Both the position numbers and the translations under genes were made by a program. DNA of 64,000 bases from Cyanophora paradoxa CCMP329. Lineage: Eukaryota > Plantae > Glaucophyta. Every line of letters begins with the position of its first letter. Position 1 is the first letter of the stretch. Shown here piece by piece: positions 16,360-36,297 of this stretch. The stretch is taken from assembly GCA_004431415.1 (NCBI GenBank), contig QPMI01000188.1, forward strand, positions 62,001 to 126,000, given 5' to 3'. Below the pieces are notes generated by a model, which was given only the letters and a program-made list of their open reading frames with translations, made no database searches and had not been told where the DNA came from.

Positions 16360-17320
16360 CCGCGAGCAGCTCGCGGTGCCGCTCGGAGGAGGGCGCCGCC
16401 TCCAGGCGCCCCCGCACCGCCTCCAGCTGCCGCCAGGCCGGCAGGCAGAGGGGGCACTCGCCCCCGCTCGGGGCCCGCTCGAGGCAGCGCCCGTGGTACG
16501 CGTGCCCGCAGCCGAAGTGCGCGGCCGGCAGGTCCAGCGGCGCCGCGCACGCCGCGCACTTCGACGACTGGCGGGGGGTACTGCGTCAGGGCTGGGGGGG
16601 GGGAAGAGAGGGGGGTAGGCGCGCCTGGTAGATCTCGGCGGAGGAGCGGAGGCGGTCGACGCCGGCGCGGGCGCGGGCGGTGCGCTGCCGGAGGGCCTCG
16701 GCGACCTCGCGGCCCCAGGCGAGGGTCTTGGAGAGGTACCCCCGCACGTCCCCGAGGGTGAGGCCGCCCTCGCCGCCCTCGGCCGCGCCGGCGGCGAGGG
16801 CGCGGAAGACAAGGAGCGGGGAGAGCGCGCCCGTCGCCTCCACGGCGCCCAGGGCGCGCGCGAGGTGCCCCGGGAAGCGCCGCGCGTTGCGGGCGAAGAA
16901 GCGCAGCGCGGCGCGCCAGGCGTGGGGGTCCGGGGCAGGGGCCCCCGGGGGCGGGGCGGCGCAGGCGGCGAGGACGGCGTCAGCTTTGCCGGCCTCGATG
17001 TGGAGCCGCAGCAGCTCGCGGCGCTGGCCCAGGCGGAGGAGGAGGAGCCGGAGGGGCGGCCGGCTGCCAGGGCGGGGACGGGCGAGGGCGAGGGCTCGGG
17101 GCGGCGGGGCGGGCCGGGACGGCAGAGCCCATCGCGCACCCCGAGACGAGGCCGGTCGACTCCTCCAGTAGCTGACGCAGGAACTCCTAGGTCGCCGCCC
17201 CTAGGTCGACTCATCTAAACCTGCGCCGCCCTAGGTCGCCTAGCGCGGCGAGGCGAGGCGGCACGCAAGCGAGCACACTGGAGGGCGCGGGAGAGGGCGG
17301 AGTCGCAGAGGGCCGACCAG
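16360..17320 (-). pseudogene. VPS11: VPS11 3' fragment, copy 4, degenerate/deleted upstream part
   Basis: RING-end region intact; 16980-17320 consists of deleted and mutated VPS11 pieces. Confidence 0.75.
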
Positions 17321-17331
17321 CTGGGGCGTCA

Positions 17332-20300
17332 CTCGCCCCGCTGTGCTTCCGCTCCAGCTGCGCGCGGGGCGGGCTGTGAGCGAGGACTGGGCAGCGGCGC
17401 GGTGGCGATGCGCACCCGAGGCTGGCAGAGGTCGCTGCGGAGCTCGCCGAGCCCTGCACACGCGGCGTCCGGCGAGGCTTCTCTGCGGCCGCGTCGAATC
17501 CGATCCAGTGGCTGTGCCCGAACGCCCGCACGCGTTCTTCGCCGCCACCGCGCGCGCTCGGGGCCGCAAGCTGGCACTCTGCTCCGTACGCGTGAGAGGA
17601 ATCAACGCGGCTTCTGCGGGGCCTCACGTTTCACGGCACCATCAGGCTGCGCTCATGCAGCCAGTGGCCTTACAATCCGTGGACTCCGAGATTTCCGAGG
17701 GAGAGCCGTGTGAGAAACTCCAAACAGAGGCTGAGCTACATCTCCGCAGCGGCTGCAAGACGCAGTGGGCCTTGCCAAGTTACAGCCCCGGGCAGCGACC
17801 TACTGAGCTGACGAGCGGCGGGCGCTGGACGTACACGACCGAAAGTCCCCGCAGGCTGCATACGTAACGAAGGCGCCAATCCCACCGCTCGGCCGCGGGA
17901 CGGCCCAGCTGCAGGCGAACGCCCGCAACACGTACCCCCCCGATTGATCGGGTTTTACGGTTAATTCTGTTCAATCCTCTCCAGCGGCCGGCAGCGCTCT
18001 GCGGGCGGCTCCGGCCAGTGGGCAATGATGAGCACATTAATCTGCATCCCAGGGACCTCTACGACGCCTTCCCCAAGCGGCGCTCGAAGGGCGAAGCTTC
18101 GGTTCGTGTGCAAGCGCGCCTTGCAGCCTCGACTCTAAGACGCGAGCCGGCGGCGCAGATGGGGTTCTGGAGTTCTCAGGAGCCGTTCGCATCACGCCAA
18201 CGCCCGTGCCGCGCGAAGCGGGAACGCCGCCGGCCTCGAGCGATCGAGGACGGTCGCCGCAGGCGGAGCGCCAGCAGCTCTCCTGAAGCCGGCTTATCGT
18301 CGACCGCAATCGATAAGGACGCGCTGGACGCAGTGACGTGGAGAAAAGCTGGCACGTCGATTGAGCAGGGTTTACGGTGAAATCTGCTCAATCCTGTGGA
18401 GCGGCTGGCCGCGGCTTGCGGCGGCCTCCGGCGAGTGGGCGACGTTCAGCGCATCGATCTGCATCCCAGGGACATCTACGACGGCTTCCCCAAGCTGTGC
18501 TCGCGGAGCCGAGCTTCGGTCCGTACGCGTGGGTACGGTGCGCGCCTCCCGGGAAGCTCGAGGCGGGCGCCAGCAGCTCGCCGGGAGGTCGCTTATCGTT
18601 GACTGCAGCAATAGACGCATTCAAGCGAGGATGAGCTAGGTGCGGGCCTGCCCCCGCTCTCTGTGCCGGTTTCGGCCAACCTGTGATCTTGAGCTCCTCG
18701 CCGCAGTGTCTGTCGGCGGCCGCCGCCGCACTGGAGGTGTAGCAGGAGATCTTCTGGTCCACTAGTCCGGCCTCCTGCGGGCCCAAGATCGGGCGGTGCG
18801 CGCGCCGCTGGCGCCGCTCCTAGGCCTGCGGCCGAGAAAGGGCCTGTGGCCGAGGAAGTTGCCTTGCTTACTCGCGCGCAGCACGGAGGCTGCATATGGG
18901 CCTGATTGACGGCGCACGCGCACCGATCCGTTCGTACGGGGCGCGCTGCGCCCCCTCCCGCCTCCATGAGACGGTCGGCGCCGGCGCGGCGGCGTGCGGC
19001 GGTGGCGTGCGGTCTGGCGGCGGGCTTTGAATTTCAGGGAGCATCGAGCGGCGCCCCCGGCGTCCGCTCCCCCTCTCTCCGGCGCCCGGGCCTTGCGGAA
19101 GGCGGCTGCTGGGCCTCACGGCGGCCGCGCGGCCCGGCCGTGGGATGGGAGTCTGCCTTGCTGGCAGACGTGCAGCTGCAGCTGCAGTACGATTATCTAT
19201 ATAGCGTGTAACCGTGATGCCAATCCCCCGCTCCGCGGATTGACGCACCGTGGCACTAGTACTGGCGAAACGAGGTGTCGAAGCCTCGATGAATATTGCA
19301 ATTGCAATTGCAATGAAGCGGCTATGATACTCGAGTGCGAAAGTCTTGAGAGGCTTAGAAAGGTGCTTGATAGCCTGCCTAGCTAGTAGCTCCTGAACGT
19401 GAACAAGAAAACTAGTGAAGATCAAATGGCCAACGTTAACAGCTTTGGAAGGCATTCGTAACCTCAAGAGAGATCGAGAGAAGAGCGCTAGCGAGCCAAG
19501 ATCTCGAAGCTTCCGCCAAGGCGCTAAGGAAGCCCAAGGGGCGAAGAAGGGGCGGCCCGCGCCGGCGGCGGCTTCGGGGGGCGGAGCGGGCGGGGTCGCG
19601 CGGCGCGGCCGGGCAGGGAAGAGGGCGAGCAGCGGCGCCGCTGGTCCTCCGCGGCGCCCTTAGACCCCCTCTTGGCGCGTCGCTCGCCCCGCTGTGCTTC
19701 CGCTCCAGCTGCGCGCGGGGCGGGCTGTGAGCGAGGACTGGGCAGCGGCGCGGTGGCGATGCGCACCCGAGGCTGGCAGAGGTCGCTGCGGAGCTCGCCG
19801 AGCCCTGCACACGCGGCGTCCGGCGAGGCTTCTCTGCGGCCGCGTCGAATCCGATCCAGTGGCTGTGCCCGAACGCCCGCACGCGTTCTTCGCCGCCACC
19901 GCGCGCGCTCGGGGCCGCAAGCTGGCACTCTGCTCCGTACGCGTGAGAGGAATCAACGCGGCTTCTGCGGGGCCTCACGTTTCACGGCACCATCAGGCTG
20001 CGCTCATGCAGCCAGTGGCCTTACAATCCGTAGACTCCGAGATTTCCGAGGGAGAGCCGTGTGAGAAACTCCAAACAGAGGCTGAGCTACATCTCCGCAG
20101 CGGCTGCAAGACGCAGTGGGCCTTGCCAAGTTACAGCCCCGGGCAGCGACTTACTGAGCTGACGAGCGGCGGGCGCTGGACACGACCGAAAGTCCCCGCA
20201 GGCTGCATTCGTAACGAAGGCGCCAATCCCACCGCTCGGCCGCGGGACGGCCCAGCTGCAGGCGAACGCCCGCAACACATACCCCCCCGATTGATGGGGT

Positions 20301-22790
20301 TTTACGGTTAATTCTGTTCAATCCTCTCCCGCGGGACGGCCCAGCTGCAGGCGGCGAACGCCCGCAACACGTACCCCCCCGATTGATCGGGTTTTACGGT
20401 TAATTCTGTTCAATCCTCTCCAGCGGCCGGCAGCGCTCTGCGGGCGGCTCCGGCCAGTGGGCAATGATGAGCACATTAATCTGCATCCCAGGGACCTCTA
20501 CGACGCCTTCCCCAAGCGGCGCTCGAAGGGCGAAGCTTCGGTTCGTGTGCAAGCGCGCCTTGCAGCCTCGACTCTAAGACGCGAGCCGGCGGCGCAGATG
20601 GGGTTCTGGAGTTCTCAGGAGCCGTTCGCATCACGCCAACGCCCGTGCCGCGCGAAGCGGGAACGCCGCCGGCCTCGAGCGATCGAGGACGGGGTCGCCG
20701 CAGGTGGAGCGCCAGCAGCTCTCCTGAAGCCGGCTTATCGTCGACCGCAATCGACAAGGACGCGCTGGACGCAGTGACGTGGAGATAAGCTGGCACGTCG
20801 ATTGAGCAGGGTTTACGGTGAACTCTGCTCAATCCTGTGGAGCGGCTGGCCGCGGCTTGCGGCGGCCTCCGGCGAGTGGGCGACGTTCAGCGCATCGATC
20901 TGCATCCCAGGGACATCTACGACGGCTTCCCCAAGCTGTGGTCCGTGGGTACGGTGCGCGCCTCCCGGGAAGCTCGAGGCGGGCGCCAGCAGCTCGCCGG
21001 GAGGTCGCTTATCGTTGACTGCAGCAATAGACGCATTCAAGCGAGGATGAGCTAGGTGCGGGCCTGCCCCCGCTCTCTCTGCCGGTTTCGGCCAACCTGT
21101 GATCTTGAGCTCCTCGCCGCAGTGTCTGTCGGCGGCCGCCGCCGCACTGGAGGTGTAGCAGGAGATCTTCTGGTCCACTGGTCCGGCCTCCTGCGGGCCC
21201 AAGATCGGGCGGTGCGCGCGCCGCTGGCGCCGCTCCTAGGCCTGCGGCCGAGAAAGGGCCTGTGGCCGAGGAAGTTGCCTTGCTTACTCGCGCGCAGCAC
21301 GGAGGCTGCATATGGGCCTGATTGACGGCGCACGCGCACCGATCCGTTCGTACGGGGCGCGCTGCGCCCCCTCCCGCCTCCATGAGACGGTCGGCGCCGG
21401 CGCGGCGGCGGGCGGCGGTGGCGTGCGGTCTGGCGGCGGGCTTTGAATTTCAGGGAGCATCGAGCGGCGCCCCCGGCGTCCGCTCCCCCTCTCTCCGGCG
21501 CCCGGGCCTTGCGGAAGGCGGCGGCTGGGCCTCACGGCGGCCGCGCGGCCCGGCCGTGGGATCGGAGTCTGCCTTGCTGGCAGACGTGCAGCTGCAGCTG
21601 CAGTACGATTATCTATAGCGTGTAACCGTGATGCCAATCCCCCGCTCCGCGGATTGACGCACCGTGGCACTAGTACTGGCGAAACGAGGTGTCGAAGCCT
21701 CGATGAATATTGCAATTGCAATTGCAATGAAGCGGCTATGATACTCGAGTGCGAAAGTCTTGAGAGGCTTAGAAAGGTGCTTGATAGCCTGCCTAGCTAG
21801 TAGCTCCTGAACGTGAACAAGAAAACTAGTGAAGATCAAATGGCCAACGTTAACAGCTTTGGAAGGCATTCGTAACCTCAAGAGAGATCGAGAGAAGAGC
21901 GCTAGCGAGCCAAGATCTCGAAGCTTCCGCCAAGGCGCTAAGGAAGCCCAAGGGCGAAGAAGGGGCGGCCCGCGCCGGCGGCGGCTTCGGGGGGCGGAGC
22001 GGGCGGGGTCGCGCGGCGCGGCCGGGCAGGGAAGAGGGCGAGCAGCGGCGCCGCTGGTCCTCCGCGGCGCCCTTAGACCCCCTCTTGAAGCGTCGCTCGC
22101 CCCGCTGTGCTTCCGCTCCAGCTGCGCGCGGGGCGGGCTGTGAGCGAGGACTGGGCAGCGGCGCGGTGGCGATGCGCACCCGAGGCTGGCAGAGGTCGCT
22201 GCGGAGCTCGCCGAGCCCTGCACACGCGGCGTCCGGCGAGGCTTCTCTGCGGCCGCGTCGAATCCGATCCAGTGGCTGTGCCCGAACGCCCGCACGCGTT
22301 CTTCGCCGCCACCGCGCGCGCTCGGGGCCGCAAGCTGGCACTCTGCTCCGTACGCGTGAGAGGAATCAACGCGGCTTCTGCGGGGCCTCACGTTTCACGG
22401 CACCATCAGGCTGCGCTCATGCAGCCAGTGGCCTTACAATCCGTGGACTCCGAGATTTCCGAGGGAGAGCCGTGTGAGAAACTCCAAACAGAGGCTGAGC
22501 TACATCTCCGCAGCGGCTGCAAGACGCAGTGGGCCTTGCCAAGTTACAGCCCCGGGCAGCGACCTACTGAGCTGACGAGCGGCGGGCGCTGGACACGACC
22601 GAAAGTCCCCGCAGGCTGCATACGTAACGAAGGCGCCAATCCCACCGCTCGGCCGCGGGACGGCCCAGCTGCAGGCGAACGCCCGCAACACATACCCCCC
22701 CGATTGATGGGGTTTTACGGTTAATTCTGTTCAATCCTCTCCCGCGGGACGGCCCAGCTGCAGGCGGCGAACGCCCGCAACACGTACCCC
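17332..22790. repeat. ~2.4-kb tandem repeat (units start 17332, 19683, 22096); third unit interrupted by the YR retrotransposon
   Basis: ctcgccccgctgtgcttcc... recurs with periods 2351 and 2413; the third unit resumes at 35376. Confidence 0.95.
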
Positions 22791-23120
22791 ACGTCGTATG
22801 CGCGCAAGGCGTAGACGAAGATTTGTGCGAGCCGGAAGTGCCAAAATTAGCCGAGTCGCCAGTTTCGCGGCCAAGCGGGATCGAACCCGCGGCCCCGGGG
22901 GCCCTCACGTTAATTGCGTAAATTGCGCAATCTCACGACAACAATCGTCATGGGGCGCGTGCCGAATTATCCCCCGGCGGCCGGACAGGGTAGCCCCCCG
23001 GCGTCGCCGGGAATATTAGGCCGGCCCCCGCCAGTTAGAGCCAGTTGCTTGCGCGACCGCACGGACGCGACCGCGCCCGTGCGGCCGCACCTCTAAATAA
23101 ATCGCGAGAATAGCCTCGCG
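22791..23120 (+). repeat. Terminal repeat A1 (330 bp)
   Basis: acgtcgtatgcgcgcaaggc...tagcctcgcg, matches 31001-31330. Confidence 0.95.
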
Positions 23121-24049
23121 CAGCAGCAGTAAGTAGCGTTGTATGCCCTCTGAGCAGCTCGCGGGCGTGCTTTCGACCGTCGAAGCGACCAAAATGCAGC
23201 TCAGCCTGCACAACGCCGAACCTCGCGAGTTTTTAACTCGCTACCTCCGTCGCGCCGGTCCTGCCGCGGGAGGCCTTCAGCTCAACTCCATCTCGGCGCC
23301 CGGCGATGAGTTGCACGCGGACCAACTCGTCCTCCCAGGTCAGTGGTGCCCCTCGGGGCGCGCGCAGTGTAGGTGGCCCGCAGGTTCTCTGCAATCACGG
23401 CATCACACTTCGCGGCCACGCCTGGGCAAGGACGAGCGAGACCGCCGATCTCGTCGTCGCGCGCACCGAGATCGGGATCGCGATCGCGACACACACCTGC
23501 GCGCACCGCCAGGCCCCACGTCACGGTCGTGCCCCCCTCTCGATAAGACGCCTTCCCATGGCAACAGCGGCCCGCGCAAGTCTCTTTTTGCGCGATGGTC
23601 ACCGGTTTCGCGCAGATTTCGAGTCTCCGCAAAAAGTGCGCGCACTTCACGATGGCCTGCTTCCGGCCAAGCCAGGGAGCACGCCCTCGCCCTGCGCGCA
23701 CGCTGCCGCACTAACCGGGTTCGAGGCGGGCGGCCTCGCCTCCGAGTCGAGCCTGATCGTCGAAGTCCCGGCCGCGCGACGGCGCAGGGGCGCGGATCAG
23801 GATCCTCGTCCCCCTGGGCGCACGACGGGCGCGGCGTGGGTGAGGCTAAGTCCCACCGCACGCCAGCTGTCCGCGTCGCCTCGAGTTCTCACACTCGCCT
23901 GCCGCGCGCAGATCGCGCCGACACCTCGCGTCAATCAGCGCTGAGGAGCGCGATCGCGAGCCTCCGGCTCGGACACCCCGCTAACCTTGCGGGAGGGGCT
24001 AGAGCGCTCACTACGCGACCGCTCGCCTCGCTCACGCCTTCGCGCGCAG

Positions 24050-27000
24050 CGGAGGCTCGCAAGCTGCTGTCCTCGCGCGCCGACCTTGAGGGCTTCTTCG
24101 AGAAGTACTTCCTCAAGTTTGGCATCCTGTTCACGGCCGCTCGGCTGTTGCCGGACAAGCAGCTGTGCCTCACGGCGTTCGGCCCGGCCGATATGTACGT
24201 GACTGAGCACGACACGGTCTCCTTCGTGCGCCTGACCTGCAAGGCTGCAAACATCGCGCCCACGGCGTCTCTGACCCAATCTGCAGGGCACGGTGTCGCA
24301 GGCCCAGCCGGCCGACGACCACCAGCGCGGCTACTTCGGCGTCCCTCTGGGGCTCCCGCTCCACTACATTCCGGAGGGCGGCGAGTCAGAGGAGGACCGC
24401 GTCGCCCCGCCGGTCCTGGCCCCCTACCGGTACGCCCCATGATCACTTCCTCTCTTTCCCGCCCGCGGACGGCGCTGATCATGTCGGCGGTGCTCGCAGC
24501 GGCCTCGAGGGCCCCTTGGGCAACATGCCGGAGCAGGCGGTGGCCTTCCCCGCCGCCCTGCAGGAGTACAAGCTCCACGTCGGCGAGGTCGCTGGCCTGT
24601 ACGCGGCGCTCCTGGCGCTCCTGGCGAACGGAATCCCCGGCGAGGCCAAGCGCCCTACCATCCCGACGATCATCAAGCGGATCTGCGACGAGCAGCGCCC
24701 GCTCGTCGTCACCGCCCTGCCCTTCGTCGCCGAAACGGTGTGCACCTGCCGGCCGTGCAGCCCGGGCCCGCCCTCCTCCTCGCTCAGCCTCGACCAGGTC
24801 GAGGCGATTTTCGCGGGAGGATCAGGGGCGGCTTTCAAGACCCTCAGCCGCTGCCCGGAGGCCGCTTGGGGCGCCGTCTTCGCGCCAACTGCCCTCAAGC
24901 AGTTCAAGCTTCGCACCCTCCCCAACCTCGCGGTACGCTCGCAGCCCCTCTCCCCTGGCAGCGGCGCCAGTTGCGTTCGTGGCCTCACGACGCCCGCGAT
25001 CGCAGACGCTCGACGACGTCCTCGCCGCTCTCTCCCCGAAGGTCTTCTCTCAGCGGCAGCTGATCGAAGTGGGCGAATACCTCCGCCCGCGCCTCGCTGG
25101 CACGCTGGAGGAGGCGCCACGCACCTCGGCGACCCGCGAAAGCGATCGCGAGCCGGCGACCTCGAGCGCCGCGGCCGAGCGCGACCCCCGGCCGGCCCAG
25201 GGCGCCAAGAAGCCTGTGTCGACCCCGGCCGGGGCGACGTCGAAGCCCGCAGCTCCCCCCTCGAAGGCCTCCAAGGCGCCCAAGAAGACCGGCGCCGCGA
25301 AGGCGCCGGCGGCTCCAGCGGTCCCAAGAAGCGGCCGCCCCCGCCGCCGCCCACTGACTCGGACGACGAGGAGGAGGACGTGGAGGTCGCCCCCAAGCGC
25401 CCCCGGCCGGCGCCAACCCCCTTCTCTGCGTTCGACAAGGGGTACGCCGGCTGGGCCCCCAATGGCAAGCGCCCCATCGCACCGGTACGCCAGCGTTCTG
25501 GGAATCCGAGCGCCACTTCCTCACGCCCGCGAGAGCAGAACGCGGCGGCGCCGGCCCAGGCACCGGCAGCCTCGCGGCCCGGCAGCTTCTTCGCGGCGCC
25601 GGGCGGGGCGCGCAACGGGAACGCTGGCAGCGGTGCGCCTCCCCCGCCTGGGCGCCCACCCCGCCTTCCCCGCGGCCACGAAATTGATGCACCGCCAGTT
25701 CCGTCGGGCGAGACCTGGAATGCGGCGCCCTGGAGCGCGATGGGCCACGCCGGCGACCTTGAGCTCGAGGACGCCGACGACTTCCTGGAGGAGGTCGACC
25801 CCCACGCGCCCCTCTACTACTCGAACCCGCCCAACGGCCAGCCGCCCTACCCGGCGACTTTCGCGGCGGCGCCCCAGCCGCCCTTCTCCTCCTCGGCTCC
25901 GGCAGCGAGCCGTGCACCGCTGCCCCCGGCGGCAGCCAAGGCGATCATCCTCCCGCCCGTGGAGGAGACAGTCCGCTCGCAGCATGGGCTGCCAATCAAC
26001 GACGTCAACAGCGCGCAGATGCGCGAGGCGGTCGTCTGGCTGGCCAAGCGCATCCAGAAGGCAGCTCAGACGCTGTCGGACGGCCGCGTCGGCGAGGAGC
26101 TCGCCCCGAACGCCGTGGCGGCAGCCGCTGCGAAGGGCGGCGCGGCGGTCGGCGCCGAGCTCGCTGACTCGGCCCTCCGCGCCGTCCTGCTCCACCTCGA
26201 GCAGGCCTTCGCGAGCCGCGATTTCGCGGGACTGCTCGCCGCCGTCCAGGTCCAGAGCGCCGTCCTCGACCACGCCCGCGCCGCAGGCGACCCGGAACTG
26301 GTGGCCTTCCTCGCCCAGCACTTCGTGAAGCTGGAGCGCGCCTGCGCCAGCCTCGAGAAGGCCACCCGCAGCGCCGTCGCCATCCACGCCCTCTGCGCTC
26401 CCTCCTCCGCCGGCGGCTTCGACCCTGTGCGCCTCGCGGCCAGCGGCGAGCTGCTCCTTGGCAAGGGCACGGTGCCCAACCCTCCCGCCCCGCCCCGCAA
26501 AAACGGTCCCGACCTCGAACTTACGGACTGCCCGGTTGCAGGCGACGAACCTCCTGAAGGAGGAGGAGGGCTTCGGGCTCGCCGGCCAGCCGACCTGGCA
26601 ACAGCTCGAGGGCGCGGAGGCAGCTCTCAAGTTCGCCCGCAAGAATCTCTCGACGGCGACGGCCTCCTCTCCGGCGGACCTGGTCCGCTCGACCTTTGCT
26701 GGTCCGTGCCCTCAGCCCCAGCCCCGCCGACAGTGCGCGCGCTGGTGCCGGCTAGCGCTGATACCGCCAGCGCGCAGAGGCCAAGTCCGGCGGGCCCATG
26801 GCCACCCTCACCCCGCAGGGGACCGGCTTCATGCCCATGTTCCCGTTCCCCCCCGCGCCTCCCGGCTACTACTACGATCCCGCCCAGCACCGCTCGGGTG
26901 GCGGTGGCGGCGGTGGCGGCCGGCTGCGCAAGGCGCGGGGCGGCGGCGGCGGTGGCGGGGGCGGCGGCGGCGGCGGCAGCCGCAACGGCGGCGGAGGCGG

Positions 27001-27094
27001 AGGCCACACCCAGCACGGCAGCGGAGGCGGCGGCCACGGCGGCGCAGGCGGCGCCGCCGGCAGCGCCGCCGGTCAGCCGGCCCGCAGCGGTTAG
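24050..27094 (+). CDS. Gag-like ORF1 of the YR element, intron-containing (5' start uncertain, possibly 23143 or 23306)
   Basis: GT-AG introns 24226-24286, 24430-24499, 24933-25005, 26472-26541 and 26702-26777 join the coding-like frames; one indel needed near 25325; Gly-rich C-terminus ends with TAG at 27094. Confidence 0.65.
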
Positions 27095-27275
27095 CGGCTC
27101 GAGCGCAGCTGTACGACAGGCCCGCAAACGCGCGGCCGAGGCCCCGCCCCCCAGATCTAGACCTGGCGCCCCCAGGCGTAATTTTGCAGTCGTCGGTAGC
27201 TCGCAGTCAGAGGCAGACAGCCCGGCAGCTAGCCCTGATTTTGATCAGGAGGCAAGATGGGACCTCAATAAATCA

Positions 27276-29395
27276 ATGATTTGGTCTCCCCTCCCGGCCG
27301 ATGCACTGCCCCGGGCCCCTTTGACACCTCCCTCTCACAACGAGTTTGCACTGCTCCGAGAGCTAGTCCGCAAGCACGGTGACCCCGGCCCGTACGACTT
27401 CGCCAGCCACGAGGCAGGCTTCCGTGCGGGCCAGCTCGCAAAGTTTGCACCTGCATGGCGGGCCCTCTTCCGCGCCGCGAACACGGAGCTGCCCTCCTGG
27501 GTTGGCCTAGTGATTCGAGAAGGCCTGCGCCTTCCTCTGCAAAAAGCGCCCGGACAGCCGGTCCCCTCACTTAAGGACCTTCCAGCGACAGCCGCCGAGC
27601 AGCCGCGCCCCTCATGCTTCAAGACGCCTGAGCACACGACCTTCGTCGACCGCGAGGTTGCCGTGATGCTGAGCCTGGGCGTGGCAAGGCTGGCGACGGC
27701 CGAGGACGTGCTCCTCACTCGCCATGTCTGCGCGCTCCATGTCGTAGACAAGAGCGGCCCTGATAAATTCCGCTTGTGCCTAGACGCAACGCCTGTAAAT
27801 GATTTTATTCAGTGCAAATCATTTCAGTATCAGTCGCTCGACCACGTGGCACCTCTGCTCACGCCGGGCTGTTGGATGGTCAAATACGACCTGCGAAAAG
27901 GCTACTATCACATTGCCTTGCACCCGGCTACTCAGCGGCTGCTGACTTTTCGCTGGCGGGGCCGCCTGTACGTCTATCAAGCCCTCTGCTTTGGCGTGAA
28001 CGTCGCTTGTCGCGTCTTCACCAAGCTGATGCGAGCCTTTGCGAAATACTGGGCAGCCCTCGGGGTTCGCCTCTGCACCTACATTGATGACGGGCTCTTC
28101 ATCTGCCCCTCACGCGAGATTGCCGAGCTGGTCTCCCAGCACCTTCGCTGGCTGGCCCCGCAGCTCGGCCTAGTGTTTTCGTCGAAGTCGGACTTCACTC
28201 CGACCCAGGTCACTGAATACCTGGGACTCGAGATCGACACCCGCCCTGGGCGCGGCGTCTTCACCGTAACGCCGAAAAAAGTGGCAAAAATCACGGCTCT
28301 CCTAGACGAGGCGCTGGCGTCCCCGACGGCCTCTGTCCGAGCCCTGCAGCGGCTTGCGGGAAAATTGATTGCGCTCCGCATGGCCTTCCCGGCCGCCCGC
28401 CTCATGACCCGCCCCATTTTTGCGGCGCTGGCGGCGGCTGAGCGTACAGGACGGAACCCGTTCGACCCGTTGGCAGTTCAGATCGACGGAGCGGTCGCGG
28501 ACGCGCTAAACTGGATGCGGCGTGTGCTCCCAACACGCCCCCACCACCCGATTTGGGAGCCCCTCCGTTTCTTTCGGCTGTTCACCGACGCCTCCGGCTA
28601 CGGTTTCGCCGCCTTCTTAGACTGTGGCGAAGGGGCCGCCCCCCTTGACGAACGGCAGGGAGATGCGTGGTCCACCTGGGGCACGTTTCCCCCAGAGCTC
28701 CGTGCCGGCGCGCAGCCCCCCGTCTCGAGCAACGAGCGTGAACTGCGAGCAGTGCTCGCAGCGGCGCGCGACCTCTTCCCCCTGCTCCCGTTCGGCGCAA
28801 AAGTCTTCCTGCGCTCCGACAACTCGACTACGGTCGCCGCAGTCGGCAAGGGCAGCGCCTCCCCCCGCCTGTTTGACCTGTGCGTCGAGCTCTGGCGACG
28901 CTGCGCAGAGCTCGGCATTATTCTTTGCGCACGCCACATTCCCGGCGTACGCAACCGCTGGGCTGACACGGCCTCGCGTTCCCTGCGCCCGCAGCTCCAC
29001 CGAGGACTGCTCGCTGCGGCGCACGCGGCTCTCGGCGCGGGCTGGCCCATGAGCACGTCGCAGACGACTCCGACGTCTGGCTGGCGGCGGCGCGGCCCCA
29101 GCGCCCCGCAATTCTCACAGCCGACTCGCGGCTCCGAGCTCGCCTTCTGGCGAGCCTCCGCGACCACCCGCCCGCCTGCCCCGTGGCCCTCCTACTACCA
29201 TGGCAGCCGAGCACGACTTGGGCGGTCGCGCTGTCCGACCTCTGGTTCCAGCCGACGGTGCAGGCCGCTTCGCTGCGACCGCGGCCGGCGCATGCCTTTT
29301 ACGCGAAACCGACGCAGGGCAAATCGCTCCTTGGCCTCGGCCGCTCCCCCTGGACCTTCGTACTGACTTGGTGGGGGGGCGTAAACGCGCTCTAA
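27276..29395 (+). CDS. Pol: reverse transcriptase + RNase H + degenerate C-terminal domain
   Basis: KFRLCLDATPVN, KYDLRKGYYH, LCFG, YIDD (28080), YLGLEID; RNase H FTDASGYG, SNERELRA, SDN, HIPGVRNRWADTASR; probable frameshift near 29046 continues to ALLLPWQPSTTW...NAL*; start arbitrary. Confidence 0.93.
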
Positions 29396-29424
29396 AAACC
29401 CATTAGAGCGGGTCGGGCCCCCTG

Positions 29425-30483
29425 ATGCACTGGGGGAGCCTCGATCTGACGCCCCACCGTGGCGCAGACACGGCCCGGCGGCCTGGCGATTCTTGGGGCG
29501 CGGTGCGCTCCGAACTCGCGCGCTGGCAGACGGCGGCGTGGGCGGAGCGCACCCGCGCAGCGGCCTCGCGCGTCTGGCGTCGCTACTTGGCCTTCCTCGC
29601 GGCTGCCCCCGAGCCGCTGCACCCCGGTGACGAAGACTCCATTCTTCTCTTCCTGGCGTCAGCGGCCCGTGCCCGCCAAGCGGCCACCGGACAACCGCTG
29701 GCTGCTACGACCATCAAAAACATGGCCGCCCACATCTGGCGTACGCTTAAAGCTGCGCGGCTCGTCGACCCCTCCCAGCAGCACTCCTGGGAGTACACGA
29801 TGACGCTCCGCGGCATGACTCGGGCACTGGGACGCCCGCCGCGCCAGATGCGGCCCCTGGTCCTGCCACAACTGCAGGCATGGACCGCAACGGCAACTTT
29901 TCGCAGCCTCCCTCCGTTCGAGCGCACCGCCTGCCTCGCACTCCTAGCGCTCGGGATCGCGGGCCTTCTCCGGATCTCCGAGGTCGCGGCGCTCCGGACC
30001 GGCGACGTCACGCCGATCATCTCTTCAGGGGGCCGGACCATGCTGCGGGTGACTATCGCCAGCTCGAAGACCGACCAAGCCGGGCACGGCGAGCACATTC
30101 TCGTCTCCCCAGCTCCCGCGGCCGGCCCGGCCTGCCCCGTCCGGGCCACTGCGGCCTACGCCTGTGCAGCCGCCCGCCGCTACGGCCCTCTCCCGCCGAC
30201 CGCCCCCTTCTTCCTCCGGGGCCCACCGAGCCGCCCCCGCGGCTACGACGACGCCCTCGGGCGCGCCATCATTAAACTCTGCGTCGGTGACATCGGCCTC
30301 GACCCAGCAAATTACTCCGGCCACAGCCTCCGACGCGGCGGGGCCCGCTCGGCAGTCCGCGGCGGCGCCTCCGCCACCTGGCTCCGCCGCCACGGCCGCT
30401 GGGCTCTCACATCGATGGTCCCCCAGCGCTATGTCGACGATTACACCGTCGCCCTGGAGGCCGAAGGCGTCGCCTTCGCTTGA
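29425..30483 (+). CDS. Tyrosine recombinase (retrotransposon YR)
   Basis: Catalytic motifs LLRISEV, SKTDQ, HSLRRGGA, GRW and QRY. Confidence 0.95.
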   Translation: MHWGSLDLTPHRGADTARRPGDSWGAVRSELARWQTAAWAERTRAAASRVWRRYLAFLAAAPEPLHPGDEDSILLFLASAARARQAATGQPLAATTIKNMAAHIWRTLKAARLVDPSQQHSWEYTMTLRGMTRALGRPPRQMRPLVLPQLQAWTATATFRSLPPFERTACLALLALGIAGLLRISEVAALRTGDVTPIISSGGRTMLRVTIASSKTDQAGHGEHILVSPAPAAGPACPVRATAAYACAAARRYGPLPPTAPFFLRGPPSRPRGYDDALGRAIIKLCVGDIGLDPANYSGHSLRRGGARSAVRGGASATWLRRHGRWALTSMVPQRYVDDYTVALEAEGVAFA

Positions 30484-30595
30484 ACCGGACTTCAGTTCCA
30501 GCTTTCCCAGCCGTGCAACCCTGTTCGCACGTGTGCACGAGAATAAAAATTTTAAATTCCACCTAGCTGCTGCTGCTTGAGACCTGGCCCTTGCT

Positions 30596-31000
30596 TGGTT
30601 TGGGCCCGGCGGGCTCCGCCCCCCGGCCCACCAATGAATTCCTGCCTAAGTCTCAGACCGCTGCACTTACCAGCGGTCGCTGTACCCCACCTCTCCCAAG
30701 AGGCCCGCTCGGCACCCTCGAGGTGCCGGGCTCGGGGTACAGCAATTCTAGACTCGCAGTAGCTCGCTAGAAAAAACGCACACGATGTGGACCCCTGGGG
30801 AAGCATCAGCCAGTATCCTCGGCTAGAGAGCGCAAGGAAACCGTGACCACACGGGGATTGCCTCTCCGGTTCGCGCCGCGAACCGTGCTCCCCTCTTCAC
30901 GATCAGCTCGAGATAGCTAGATGCTCGAGTTGAAGTGAATCAATATATTACATACTCTGGGCGCTCGGCGGAGAAAAAAGCACGAGAGGCCCCGCATAAA
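30596..31000 (+). repeat. Terminal repeat B1 (405 bp)
   Basis: Matches 31599-31794 + 35167-35375, with one C/T difference seen. Confidence 0.93.
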
Positions 31001-31330
31001 ACGTCGTATGCGCGCAAGGCGTAGACGAAGATTTGTGCGAGCCGGAAGTGCCAAAATTAGCCGAGTCGCCAGTTTCGCGGCCAAGCGGGATCGAACCCGC
31101 GGCCCCGGGGGCCCTCACGTTAATTGCGTAAATTGCGCAATCTCACGACAACAATCGTCATGGGGCGCGTGCCGAATTATCCCCCGGCGGCCGGACAGGG
31201 TAGCCCCCCGGCGTCGCCGGGAATATTAGGCCGGCCCCCGCCAGTTAGAGCCAGTTGCTTGCGCGACCGCACGGACGCGACCGCGCCCGTGCGGCCGCAC
31301 CTCTAAATAAATCGCGAGAATAGCCTCGCG
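31001..31330 (+). repeat. Repeat A2; the B1|A2 junction reproduces the element end|start (circle) junction
   Basis: ...cccgcataaa|acgtcgtatg... Confidence 0.95.
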
Positions 31331-31598
31331 ACCCACCCTCCCGCACCTCTCCGACCTCAGGACCTGGGCGAAGGCCTGGCTCGGAGCCGAATTAAATTGC
31401 GGTGACCCGAATTCGAATTCGAATTTCGGATTTCTGAGTTCGGCCGAAGAAACTTTAACCGCGGTTTTTCAAAAAATCGGCCTGTCAAAAACAAGCCAAC
31501 TTCGGTATATCGAATCCGAAGGCTGGAAGGGAATTCCTGGCAAGAGCTGAGCTGTACGCCAAGTTCCAGTTCTTGGCTACGGCTCAGCAACTTGGGCA

Positions 31599-31794
31599 TG
31601 GTTTGGGCCCGGCGGGCTCCGCTCCCCGGCCCACCAATGAATTCCTGCCTAAGTCTCAGACCGCTGCACTTACCAGCGGTCGCTGTACCCCACCTCTCCC
31701 AAGAGGCCCGCTCGGCACCCTCGAGGTGCCGGGCTCGGGGTACAGCAATTCTAGACTCGCAGTAGCTCGCTAGAAAAAACGCACACGATGTGGA
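31599..31794 (+). repeat. Repeat B2, left part (ends with TSD copy 1, 31774-31794)
   Basis: Copy of 30596-30791. Confidence 0.93.
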
Positions 31795-34700
31795 ATATAT
31801 TAAATTTGCATTAGCACAACCGTACAACACTGAAGTCGTAACGTCGACCATACCCTCACTGAAAACTATATCCAGGAAGAGAATATGAGGACTCTCGTGT
31901 GCTGTGCCTAAACATCTACCTATATATATAACTAGCTATCCATCTAACTCTACCCCTGGGCTAGTCCTATGCTAATAGGTGGGGATGGAGCGAGGGTGGT
32001 AAAGCTGGTGGGGTGGTACTGCCTGAGTGGAGAGGTGAGGAGCTTGGTGCCTCCGGCCCCGCTAGGGCCGGGGGTTCAGAGAGGATTAGGCCTCCACTTT
32101 GGCTGGGCACTCCCGCTCCGTTGCTCCCCGACTCCAGCTGTCCGCCCCCTCCCAAGTCTACCCCCCTCTCCCCCCCCGGCATGGGCCCGCCCTCCCCTGC
32201 CTGTACGCACAACTTGCCAGTGTCCTTCACACTAGCACGTACAATCCTCGAGGCCTCTCTAGTCTTTAACTGCGGCCTGGCTGCTGGGCTGCAAGCATGG
32301 CGCCAAAATACATCGCCTGCGCCTGGTTCATCTGCATCTGCTGTGCCACCTGCTGCGGCGTCTGCTGCATCATAAATCCCGGGAACCCCCCCGGGAGCTG
32401 GGGGGAGAGGATGGGGATCGGGGGCTGAGGCGCCGCCACCTCCACCGGAGTGTGTCCTCCGCGCCCGCCGTGGGGTCCGCCGCGTCCGCGCGTCCCGCGG
32501 CCCCGCGAGTTGCGGCCACGGGTATCGTTGCTGCTCAGCGCCGGCGCCGCTGACGTCACTGCTGCCGAGTCTATGCCCAGCTGCAGCGGCGGCCAGGATG
32601 CTGCGGGGACGCCGGCCACGACGGCAAAGAGGTCGGTCGGCGTTGCGCTGCTGCCGCCCCAGGCTGGCGCTGGCGGGCCGTGGGAGGTACAAATGGCTGC
32701 AGCACCCGAGGGCGCTTGGCCTCCTTGGGGAAGAAAGTCTCGCGGGGTCCGCCTCTTCCTGGTCGCGCTTGCTCCCGCGCCCGCGCCCAGCGTTCGCTGC
32801 TGCGCCGCCGCGTCCACGGCCGCGGCTGCTGGCTGCTGAGCCCGGCTGCTGGCCAGCCAACGACGCTGCTGACGCCTCAGCGTCCGCCTCGCCGCTCGTC
32901 CGCGGCTTCCAGTCCGTGCCCGGGCACTTCGAGCTCTTGTGTTCGAAGTAGGCTTGGAGGCGGTGACGGCGGCAGCCAGCGGGGCTGAAGTTCTGGAGCG
33001 CCTTCGGGGTGAGGCTCGCCGGCGGCCGGACACGCCAGAGCGAGGCCGTGTGGTCCGCCACCTGCATTGAGAGGTGAAGCGTCTCGCCGCACGAGTAGCG
33101 CACGCCAGGCGCGGCGGGCTTCATCGCCGCCTCCCAGGCAGCCACCTTCTCCTTCTTGATAAGGAGGTGCAGCACGTCGCCGTCGGGTGGTGACTGGCCG
33201 TGACTGTAGCTGCATTGGTGGTAGACCAGCGTCACTTCTGCCGGGTTGCGCGCCACTTCCTTGAGGATGGTGGGCAGCTGCCAAGCCTTCAGCCTTCTGC
33301 GTCCGCGGGGACGGGAGGGGAAAAAGGACTCTCGGCTCACCGGGAGTTGCGCTGTCGCCGCGTGCAGAGCCAGAACAAAGGTGCCGCAGGTGTGGAGCTC
33401 GGGGCCTCGGTTGCGAGGTTCACCGTGATGGGACACGACTCGAACCGCAGCAGGTTCGCCTTGCTGAGTTCGATCAGTCTGCGAGCGCGGGTTGCTGTCA
33501 GCCTCAGGTCAGCCCCGGTCGCCGTGCGCGGCAACGTACTTGTTGGCCAGGTGAACGTTGCCGGTGGTGAGGGCGATGCGCGGAGGCTCGCGCATGATCA
33601 TGTTCTGTTGTACCGCCGCTGGCGTGCCGGCCCATCCGAGGACTCGAAAGCCGAGGCATTCTGCCTCCAGCTGCGTACCAGCGGTTGGTTAGCGTTCGCC
33701 GCGTGGCCGGTTAGATCATCGCACCGTGCCGTCTTGCAGCGGCGTGAGTTTCTCCCGCGTCGCGGTCTTAAGCGACTTCGTCGCGTCGTGCTCCACCTGG
33801 CGCGCCAGTGTGCGGAAGAGATGAAGCACATCGCGGCGCGTGTTCGCGGAGAAGTTGCCGTCCGGCTGGAGGCCGCCCTTGGTAGAGAACACCGGGGCGC
33901 CGTCGATGAGGATCATTGGCGCGTGCTCCTTGTCATCGAGCAGCATCCATGGTTTCGGGGCTCTCTGCGCATGCACAGTTATGGGGAAGTCGTTCCGGCT
34001 CGCTCGGCGGCTTACCACTACTGGCGAATCGATCTGGTAGATCGTCACTTCGTCTCGGCGATTCGTCTTGTTCGGCAATTTCACCGCGAGGCATGTAGCG
34101 ACGCGCAGTTTCGCAGCCGTGTCTTTGGTCCACTGCGAGGGGTGAGTGAGGAGACTTGGGGACGGGCGTATCGTCAGATCGGGCGTACCTTGCGAGCTTT
34201 CGCATATGTGACATCTGTCATCACGTCCGGCGTTGCCAGTACTGCGACGCACCCCTTTGAGGGGAAGTTGGTGCGCACTCCGCCGTGGGCGATGTTCCGT
34301 TCTGAGATCACCTGTCGCACATTCTCAGCGTGGGCGGGAGCTCGCTCGGCCGAGTCATGACGGACCGTTTGAACCATATGTTTGCGTTCATTCAGTGGGA
34401 CTAGCCCGTCGCCGTTGAGGCAGAGTTGGGTCCCCGCGTACTTGGTCGGGACAAGGTCGAGCGGTTCGAAGACGACCGCAACCATGAACTTCGGGACGCG
34501 GAAGGTCTTGTTTATCGGTTGCGACTTGTCCCGTCGCTCTCCGGCCGTCGGCGCTCGCACAACTGGGCCGCTCGGCCCTGCCGCGTCATCGTCGTCGGCG
34601 TCGCCGGCATAGTCTTCATCTTCGCCGGCGTTCACCGCAGCGCCCTGCTCTCCGGCTTCTGCACCAGCGCCTTGCTCGCCGAGATCTGCGCCGTTGCCAG

Positions 34701-35145
34701 CATCGTCGATCTCGCCGAGGCCGTCCATGAGCTCATCGCCATCGGCGTCTCCGCCTTCCTGGCCAGCGCCTTCCTCAGCAGCGCCAGGCTGGGCTGGCGT
34801 TGCGAACGGGTTGAACTCCTGTTCCGCCATCGTGTGGCGCACTTCTCTGCGCATCGTCGTGTCGGTTAGACAACTGGTGCGAAATCGTGCCGGGCCTGGA
34901 GCTTGGCCGGTTAACTGGCCGTCCAGAAGACGTGGCATCTCATTTCAGGACAGGGGGTCCTGTGATTGCGGCAAAGGCCTTTGCGGCGACAAGCAGTGGC
35001 CTTTCGGCGGATTTGAGCCATCGGGCGGGCGCGAGGCACGCTAGAGGTCTCACCAGCGCAGACACTGGCTCCCACAGTGTGTAGGCGTCGTGTCGGCGCG
35101 GGTTCCGGCGCCTCGTGCTCCTTTTTCGGGGTACCGGAATCGCAA
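31795..35145. mobile_element. 3.35-kb nested insertion with 21-bp TSD, non-autonomous (no RT or transposase recognised)
   Basis: aaaaaacgcacacgatgtgga is single in B1 (30771-30791) but duplicated at 31774-31794 and 35146-35166, flanking the insert. Confidence 0.9.
32266..34830 (-). CDS. Spliced ~780-aa ORF1/Gag-like protein of the nested element (acidic N-terminus, Zn-knuckle-like CRRH-x7-H-x4-C, RG/Q-rich C-terminus)
   Basis: ATG 34830 (MAEQEFNPF); GT-AG introns 34188-34133, 33724-33671, 33539-33479 and 33340-33297 join four stop-terminated segments into one frame; indels needed around 32680-32750. Confidence 0.7.
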
Positions 35146-35375
35146 AAAAAACGCACACGATGTGGACCCCTGGGGAAGCATCAGCCAGTATCCTCGGCTA
35201 GAGAGCGCAAGGAAACCGTGACCACACGGGGATTGCCTCTCCGGTTCGCGCCGCGAACCGTGCTCCCCTCTTCACGATCAGCTCGAGATAGCTAGATGCT
35301 CGAGTTGAAGTGAATCAATATATTACATACTCTGGGCGCTCGGCGGAGAAAAAAGCACGAGAGGCCCCGCATAAA
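35146..35375 (+). repeat. TSD copy 2 + right part of repeat B2 (element 3' end)
   Basis: Copy of 30771-31000, ending gccccgcataaa. Confidence 0.93.
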
Positions 35376-36297
35376 CCCGATTGATCGGGTTTTACGGTTA
35401 ATTCTGTTCAATCCTCTCCAGCGGCCGGCAGCGCTCTGCGGGCGGCTCCGGCCAGTGGGCAATGATGAGCACATTAATCTGCATCCCAGGGACCTCTACG
35501 ACGCCTTCCCCAAGCGGCGCTCGAAGGGCGAAGCTTCGGTTCGTGTGCAAGCGCGCCTTGCAGCCTCGACTCTAAGACGCGAGCCGGCGGCGCAGATGGG
35601 GTTCTGGAGTTCTCAGGAGCCGTTCGCATCACGCCAACGCCCGTGCCGCGCGAAGCGGGAACGCCGCCGGCCTCGAGCGATCGAGGACGGGGTCGCCGCA
35701 GGCGGAGCGCCAGCAGCTCTCCTGAAGCCGGCTTATCGTCGACCGCAATCGACAAGGACGCGCTGGACGCAGTGACGCGGAGAAAAGCTGGCACGTCGAT
35801 TGAGCAGGGTTTACGGTGAACTCTGCTCAATCCTGTGGAGCGGCTGGCCGCGGCTTGCGGCGGCCTCCGGCGAGTGGGCGACGTTCAGCGCATCGATCTG
35901 CATCCCAGGGACATCTACGACGGCTTCCCCAAGCTGTGGTCCGTGGGTACGGTGCGCGCCTCCCGGGAAGCTCGAGGCGGGCGCCAGCAGCTCGCCGGGA
36001 GGTCGCTTATCGTTGACTGCAGCACTAGACGCATTCAAGCGAGGATGAGCTAGGTGCGGGCCTGCCCCCGCTCTCTGTGCCGGTTTCGGCCAACCTGTGA
36101 TCTTGAGCTCCTCGCCGCAGTGTCTGTCGGCGGCCGCCGCCGCACTGGAGGTGTAGCAGGAGATCTTCTGGTCCACTGGTCCGGCCTCCTGCGGGCCCAA
36201 GATCGGGCGGTGCGCGCGCCGCTGGCGCCGCTCCTAGGCCTGCGGCCGAGAAAGGGCCTGTGGCCGAGGAAGTTGCCGTGCTTACTCGCGCGCAGCA
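35376..36297. repeat. Continuation of the third 2.4-kb repeat unit
   Basis: Matches ~20378-21300. Confidence 0.92.

Follow-up and report, generated by a model that had tools for sequence, protein, structure and literature searches.

Retroelements normally lose introns, being copied from processed RNA. In elements of the Ty1/copia type (Drosophila copia, BARE, Arabidopsis EVD shGAG), Gag is made from a spliced, prematurely terminated subgenomic RNA, and the unspliced full-length RNA serves as template and as pol mRNA; what the intron takes out there is pol sequence, and gag is encoded without interruption. In an algal tyrosine recombinase (YR) retrotransposon, introns have already been reported: transcripts of the PAT-like element kangaroo-1 of Volvox carteri contain them, according to a paper that cites Duncan et al. 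2002 for this observation (PMC1636488). From the transcript of the YR element DIRS-1, which has been tagged experimentally, a sense intron is removed and new copies are found without it (PMC7192593). Penelope-like elements keep introns after retrotransposition by a mechanism that is unknown, which has been called "highly unusual" (PMC8557442), and intron-containing RNA of retroviruses and of Cer1-type long terminal repeat (LTR) elements must evade nuclear retention and splicing (PMC10309623). Described here is a YR retrotransposon of the glaucophyte Cyanophora paradoxa CCMP329, located on contig QPMI01000188.1 (positions 62,001 to 126,000, forward strand; this stretch of 64,000 nt is called the window, and all positions given below are counted within it), the first open reading frame (ORF1) of which is split by nine spliceosomal introns. 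As DIRS-1 loses its sense intron on retrotransposition, the retention of introns in this element needs explaining. A literature search returned no paper on YR elements of Cyanophora or other glaucophytes, or on an intron-split, multi-intron gag in YR elements.

Splicing of the first gene

Contigs of four sequencing runs were aligned to positions 22791–28700: X17 and X18, which share a sample, X19, which belongs to a different study, and the DNA run X1. The label of X17, X18 and X19 as RNA is a guess, and their RNA nature is indicated by the splice joints themselves together with zero depth over 27519–28700. Nine identical GT..AG joints were found in each of these three RNA-like runs, which represent two studies (Table 1), and none of the nine was present in the contigs of X1, the only DNA run aligned. 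The X1 contigs ran unbroken through introns 2–9, a single contig of 3266 nt being continuous over 23678–26930. ORF1 is confirmed as a ten-exon gene, split by nine real, host-like, frame-restoring spliceosomal introns.

Five frame-restoring introns had been proposed in a first-pass annotation made from the sequence alone, and their coordinates are those of joints seen in the three RNA-like runs and absent from X1; its two in-frame candidates (introns 4 and 6) were matched by exact joints in RNA-like contigs. The statement that at least five introns are present was correct as to their reality and low as to their number, introns 1 and 7 not having been listed. A search for RNA junctions had been suggested as a check, and spliced joints were obtained in transcript-like contigs of all three runs and both studies; on the accompanying question of retention in genomic copies, the only DNA versions seen (the window and X1) keep every intron.

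Table 1 Positions of the element, its repeats, its genes and the nine introns of ORF1 in the window
Feature	Position	Strand	Evidence or remark
Whole insertion, YR retrotransposon plus one nested insertion	22791–35375 (12.6 kb)	+	Precise, within a single unit of a tandem repeat of ~2.4 kb; no target-site duplication
Repeat A1	22791–23120	+	A1 = A2 in 330/330 positions; holds transcript start (~23022–23027) and AATAAATC at 23096
ORF1 mRNA	23022–27282	+	Ten exons, all covered by a single 3021-nt contig of X18
ORF1 coding span	23143–27094	+	ATG at 23143 to TAG at 27092–27094; 903 codons once the nine introns are taken out and a C is added after 25322
ORF1 intron 1	23339–24049 (711 nt)	+	In frame, stop-free; joint 23335>24047 (cut +3) in X17, X18 and X19; missing from first-pass annotation
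ORF1 intron 2	24226–24286 (61 nt)	+	Joint in three RNA-like runs, none in DNA
ORF1 intron 3	24430–24499 (70 nt)	+	Joints in RNA-like contigs
ORF1 intron 4	24738–24797 (60 nt)	+	In frame; joints in RNA-like contigs
ORF1 intron 5	24933–25005 (73 nt)	+	Joints in RNA-like contigs
ORF1 intron 6	25485–25538 (54 nt)	+	In frame; joints in RNA-like contigs
ORF1 intron 7	25633–25698 (66 nt)	+	In frame; joints in RNA-like contigs; missing from first-pass annotation
ORF1 intron 8	26472–26541 (70 nt)	+	Joints in RNA-like contigs
ORF1 intron 9	26702–26777 (76 nt)	+	Joints in RNA-like contigs
C-run deficit	25322	+	One C, present in all aligned DNA and RNA runs, missing in window; probably an assembly homopolymer error
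AATAAATC, candidate poly(A) signal of ORF1 mRNA	27267–27274	+	Motif match and nearby contig ends
pol frame: RT (YIDD), RNase H, C-terminal conserved region	27276–29395	+	RVT_1; uninterrupted bar a 1-nt C deficit near 29047
Tyrosine recombinase frame (352 aa)	29425–30483	+	R, K, HxxR, H-W and Y motifs by eye
Repeat B1	30593–31000	+	B1–A2 junction has the sequence of B2 end followed by A1 start (circle junction)
Repeat A2	31001–31330	+	Identical to A1
Single-copy spacer between A2 and B2 (265 bp)	31331–31595	+	Also in DNA run X1 (loose contig end at 23120)
Repeat B2	31596–31794 and 35146–35375	+	Split by nested insertion
Nested insertion in B2	31795–35145 (3351 bp)	ORFs on minus strand	21-bp duplication: 30771–30791 = 31774–31794 = 35146–35166

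Eight of the nine introns are 54–76 nt long. The 5' splice sites resemble G/GTGCGC or G/GTACGC (slash, splice site), with (C or G)CAG on the 3' side. Host genes of C. paradoxa have 9.2 introns on average with a mean length of 86 bp, and the 2019 assembly of the species is described as having 67.6% G+C and short introns (PMC6704402). Sampled words of 23121–27300 were present at a share of 0.87–0.89 in 16 DNA-type runs, compared with 0.52–0.68 in four runs guessed to be RNA; the lower share matches what would be expected if the introns, which make up 1241 of the 4180 nt (~30%), are missing from these runs. All nine lie in the 2.7 kb of ORF1 and none in the 3.2 kb of pol and YR, a distribution with a probability of ~1e-3 under uniform placement by our own arithmetic. 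That the frames for reverse transcriptase (RT) with RNase H and for the YR carry no introns, as also stated at the first pass, is consistent with their uninterrupted homology to sister proteins; transcript contigs on 27519–28700 were absent.

Within intron 1, low transcript coverage was seen over 23354–23911, with an additional 72-nt GT..AG joint (23838>23911) in X18; the short introns were uncovered. This coverage may represent an alternative exon or partly processed RNA.

Transcript of ORF1

The transcript contigs start at ~23022–23027, within repeat A1, and their 3' ends in the three runs fall at 27254, 27268 and 27282, with the limit that neither poly(A) tails nor true ends are visible in contigs. 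As assembled, the spliced ORF1 RNA begins within A1 and ends ~10–15 nt past the AATAAATC at 27267 and at the pol ATG (27276), which is new here. The motif AATAAATC occurs in the 64 kb only at 23096, 27267 and 31306 (three matches, 0.14 expected), and its positions at 23096 and 31306 are ~20 nt before the end of repeat A. Since the spliced RNA as assembled ends before pol, it appears to be a subgenomic mRNA for ORF1 only and not a spliced full-length RNA; it would be an internally polyadenylated, gag-only message, with a putative poly(A) site. The full ORF1 is encoded by this spliced RNA, in agreement with the earlier proposal that spliced RNA is the source of the first-gene product. Over the RT, transcript contigs of the three RNA-like runs were absent from 27519–28700, where depth was zero.

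A further plus-strand AATAAA is present at 30542, ~60 nt past the YR stop and before B1, and hints at a separate end of a pol–YR transcript. All four plus-strand AATAAA of the element are located at 3' ends of units, namely A1, ORF1, YR and A2.

Reading frame, window errors and element versions

Without an extra C after 25322, the joined ORF1 has stops appearing at codon 696. This C was present in all four aligned runs, the DNA run X1 included, and the window is one C short; the frame switch near 25300, where no intron is found, is explained by this 1-nt deficit. A second 1-nt deficit in a C run was located in pol at ~29045–29047, across which the public protein P0001 is continuous. Both deficits (25322 and ~29047) suggest homopolymer-length errors of the assembly, and since such deficits break true frames, frame breaks elsewhere in the genome need care.

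At ~70% G+C in the window, frames remain open by chance over 23143–26328 (1061 codons) and 24516–29366 (1616 codons), crossing introns and out-of-frame exons. ORF length alone is therefore uninformative, and the true frame is shown only by the periodicity of third-position G+C (GC3) and by RNA. The third-position signal changes frame repeatedly over 24050–27100, at the short GT...AG segments of the first-pass annotation, and stays in one frame through the RT; GC3 is 0.89 in ORF1, 0.81 in YR and 0.75 in pol.

Exon 8 is 100% identical to the public model P0015 (tig00000147_g9507.t1, 881 aa, multi-exon), which stands beside g9508, the RT, and presents the gene as a normal one in which two introns have been kept by mistake. 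When the copy in the window is set against that in X1, seven of eight coding differences prove to be synonymous (ORF1 5/6, pol 2/2), and by this comparison of sequences the ORF1 protein is under constraint. At 25940, an extra GCC (one more Ala) occurs in X1 and P0015 and is found neither in the RNA-like runs nor in the window, and at six exonic sites the RNA contigs match the letters of the window, not those of X1; from these differences it follows that the element occurs in two versions, which are either strains or copies. As a practical matter, a gene of the element has entered the public proteome as an ordinary host gene, in a genome where homopolymer deficits break true frames and chance frames of >1000 codons stay open.

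Structure and insertion of the element

Split direct repeats in the order A1-internal-B1-A2-B2, near-identical at insertion, are the design of PAT-like as well as Ngaro-like elements, in which repeat identity is taken as a sign of recent insertion (PMC6681497, PMC8969392); the layout of the PAT and Ngaro types has been explained by reverse transcription (PMC6681497). The element follows the order A1-internal-B1-A2-spacer-B2, which is the split-direct-repeat arrangement save for the 265-bp spacer, and the identity of B1 and B2 is 99–100%. In two empty sister units (20377/20378 and 17938/17939), the left flank, which ends at 22790, runs directly into the right flank, which starts at 35376, and in comparison with these two empty repeat units the insertion has zero duplicated bases, as in the DIRS order. 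The introns are part of the mobile unit, the insertion being precise and intron-bearing and its A repeats identical. The element is intact in structure and young, a YR retrotransposon of the split-direct-repeat kind (PAT-like grade).

The single-copy spacer that separates A2 from B2 departs from the textbook layout. The target of the insertion is a tandem array (17000–22790 and from 35376) of ~2.35–2.44-kb units that are 97–100% identical, two of which have the empty site. Other copies of the element or of its sister families were not found in the 64-kb window.

pol, tyrosine recombinase and sister families

The RT, an enzyme of the DIRS order, was identified in pol by a Pfam match to RVT_1 (E = 5.4e-11, 43 bits against a cut-off of 29.6). 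Phage_integrase at the YR frame remained below the Pfam cut-off (E = 0.017), with E = 2.9e-5 in the sister protein P0002, and in tblastn the frame matched the YR portion of sister proteins at 45% identity, which identifies it as YR and not DDE. Neither a GIY-YIG endonuclease nor a telomerase-like RT appeared in the Pfam scans, which showed only RVT_1 and YR. Against EukProt proteins named in the form tig000..._g....t1, the RT frame reached identities of up to 93%, and sister families in the same proteome had an RT identity of 43–64%. A methyltransferase-like domain behind RNase H is among the characters that separate PAT-like from Ngaro-like elements; at this place (29048–29395) the element has a region of ~115 aa that is conserved in sister proteins and is named by no family model. 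The sister gene P0009 is located on a 3.8-kb contig without an upstream region. The gene model P0013 (tig00001234_g7734.t1) combines a protein-kinase domain with a piece of the RT from a sister YR family, which probably reflects either a chimeric prediction or insertion into a host gene.

Nature of the ORF1 product

ORF1 occupies the position of a gag gene, being the first ORF, upstream of pol and transcribed from the terminal repeat. In its product, KKRP and KRPRP occur within a stretch rich in Lys and Pro; there are also an acidic run and a tail rich in Gly and Arg. Searches were carried out with single exons, with the unspliced one-frame region and with the public protein P0015, and the joined 903-aa model was used for frame arithmetic only. 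No Pfam family was obtained for the single exons or P0015, a word search with exon 8 returned only its own public model, and a feature search of the ESM Atlas gave no usable match. AlphaFold models had a mean predicted local distance difference test (pLDDT) score of 48 for the helical part of exon 8 and of 40 for P0015:1-345, too low for a fold search. By its composition, with basic stretches resembling nuclear localization signals and Gly/Arg-rich stretches, the product may be a Gag-like nucleic-acid-binding or structural protein. The name gag, applied without qualification at the first pass, is thus used by position only, there being no homologue, Pfam match or CCHC motif and the fold models being unusable.

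Proposed mechanism

On balance, and by a small measure, the reading favoured here is that of a YR retrotransposon with a nine-intron first gene, in which a spliced mRNA serves ORF1 and an unspliced read-through RNA is the template. The ORF1 protein would be made only from the spliced, prematurely polyadenylated subgenomic mRNA. A minor RNA escaping both splicing and the internal poly(A) site (~27285) would continue through pol, YR, B1 and A2 and be the template of reverse transcription. As definition of the terminal exon depends on its poly(A) signal together with the last 3' splice site, failure of splicing and read-through would be coupled, giving two RNA fates from one promoter. The intron-free pol and YR frames would fit reading from unspliced RNA, for which the proposal gives no route of the ribosome to the pol ATG. 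Retention of introns 8 and 9 would make a Gag-Pol fusion possible on paper, as a frame of 1719 codons can be read from the gag ATG to the pol stop; against it, frame 1 is equally stop-free over 26472–27275, and RNA over pol was not seen. Two RNA populations in the manner of a retroviral switch (fully spliced, internally polyadenylated ORF1 mRNA on the one side, unspliced read-through RNA as template and pol/YR mRNA on the other), or else an RT-encoding element spreading as DNA through its recombinase, are put forward tentatively and with some doubt.

Several observations weigh against the favoured reading. In a phmmer search of P0015 against 1.84 billion representatives, which include the proteome of C. 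paradoxa, only the protein itself was retrieved, with no relative from a sister element or the host. A CCHC zinc knuckle pattern is absent from ORF1, which contains only five Cys, and the product is large for a Gag (903 aa) with a GC3 above that of pol (0.89 against 0.75). No unspliced or full-length RNA of the element and no pol RNA was found in the contigs, which drop rare forms; the earlier suggestion that unspliced RNA is selectively packaged and reverse-transcribed thus found no support, within the same limit, in either full-length or RT-region RNA. The spacer between A2 and B2 is not accounted for by a simple R-to-R transcript. Finally, there is only one copy in the window and one gene model of the family in the public proteome, and with a single copy, repeated passage of the introns through transposition is not demonstrated.

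Alternative explanations

ORF1 might not be a Gag at all, but a host-derived or newly arisen cargo gene between A1 and pol, spliced in the manner of host genes from the promoter of the repeat and carrying the introns of the captured gene. Its nine introns compare with the host average of 9.2, their size of 54–76 nt with the host mean of 86, and its GC3 of 0.89 with 0.75 in pol; it has its own 3' end ahead of pol, lacks a CCHC motif and is unlike any retroelement ORF1, that of the sister families included. For a recent capture, however, no donor is visible, no host paralogue being present among the 1.84 billion representatives, and the ORF is placed exactly at the gag position with a transcript from the terminal repeat. 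The introns of a cargo gene must likewise survive transposition, and the puzzle stays. This explanation is considered unlikely, though of some weight.

The expression of a fully spliced ORF1 beside a pol without transcript contigs would also fit an immobile, possibly domesticated single-copy relic, in which ORF1 is kept for the host and pol and YR are silent passengers. One ORF1 gene model and one RT model in the public proteome, and five synonymous differences out of six in ORF1, point in this direction. Such a relic is nevertheless improbable in view of the repeats (A1 = A2 in 330/330 positions, B1 vs B2 99–100%) and of the empty sister repeat units, which indicate recent insertion. Moreover, the pol and YR frames and motifs are intact save for homopolymer deficits contradicted by reads or by a public protein model, and a later mobile element landed in B2, placing the site in active repeat DNA.

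It is quite improbable that the element moved as DNA, with a circular form excised or copied by the YR and integrated in a Crypton-like manner, so that the introns never met the spliceosome and the RT was dispensable or rarely used. In elements of the PAT and Ngaro types, reverse transcription accounts for this same arrangement of repeats (PMC6681497), and the RT model leads one to expect identity of the A and of the B repeats at insertion. Motifs of both RT (YIDD) and RNase H are intact, and as the pol differences between the two versions are synonymous, the RT is under constraint, which counts against a DNA route. In favour of such a route are the precise insertion without target duplication together with the B1–A2 circle junction, the intact catalytic motifs of the YR, the lack of RT-region RNA in the three RNA-like runs, and the nine efficiently spliced introns themselves, which are hard to square with an RNA template.

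Simple indels in a decaying copy, with GT..AG ends by chance, had been named at the first pass as the null for the frame switches, and are ruled out by nine exact GT..AG joints in RNA-like contigs of two independent studies, absent from DNA and restoring one frame of 903 codons. In favour of this null, the window does fall short by 1 nt in each of two homopolymers (25322, ~29047), and with a GC content of 70% it is common for off-frame ORFs to exceed 1000 codons.

Comparison with known systems

An intact, recent YR element with nine efficiently spliced introns in its first gene is an extreme counter-example to intron loss. It offers a concrete system for the question of how the template of a retroelement evades the spliceosome, which has so far been posed mainly from Penelope-like elements, and with it one can test if the proportion of structural protein to template is governed by splicing together with internal polyadenylation.

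With kangaroo-1, the element shares its nature as an algal YR retrotransposon, the split direct repeats and the introns reported for its transcripts (PMC1636488, citing Duncan et al. 2002). In the element described here there are nine introns, all in ORF1, and the 3' end of the mRNA lies before pol. The host of kangaroo-1 is a green alga, whereas the present element resides in a glaucophyte and its ORF1 has no detectable similarity to anything. DIRS-1 of Dictyostelium discoideum resembles it as a YR retrotransposon that codes for ORF1 (gag), RT/RNase H and YR and integrates without target duplication, but it has inverted terminal repeats and an internal complementary region in place of split direct repeats, and it loses its sense intron, whereas nine introns are kept here.

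The likeness to Penelope-like elements is confined to intron retention. These belong to another RT clade, with GIY-YIG, pseudo-LTRs, target-primed synthesis and usually one intron in the 5' untranslated region or ORF, whereas the element described here is without GIY-YIG and has a YR. Retroviruses and Cer1-type elements have one or few regulated introns and dedicated export elements or proteins; none of the latter was identified here, an Rfam scan of 22000–36000 having returned nothing.

The proposed division into a spliced Gag message and an unspliced template is shared in outline with Ty1/copia elements, with the difference that the unspliced RNA of the latter still encodes Gag, whereas the unspliced RNA of the present element cannot encode ORF1. 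If the favoured reading is true, the structural gene of this YR retrotransposon would be decodable only after nine splicing events.

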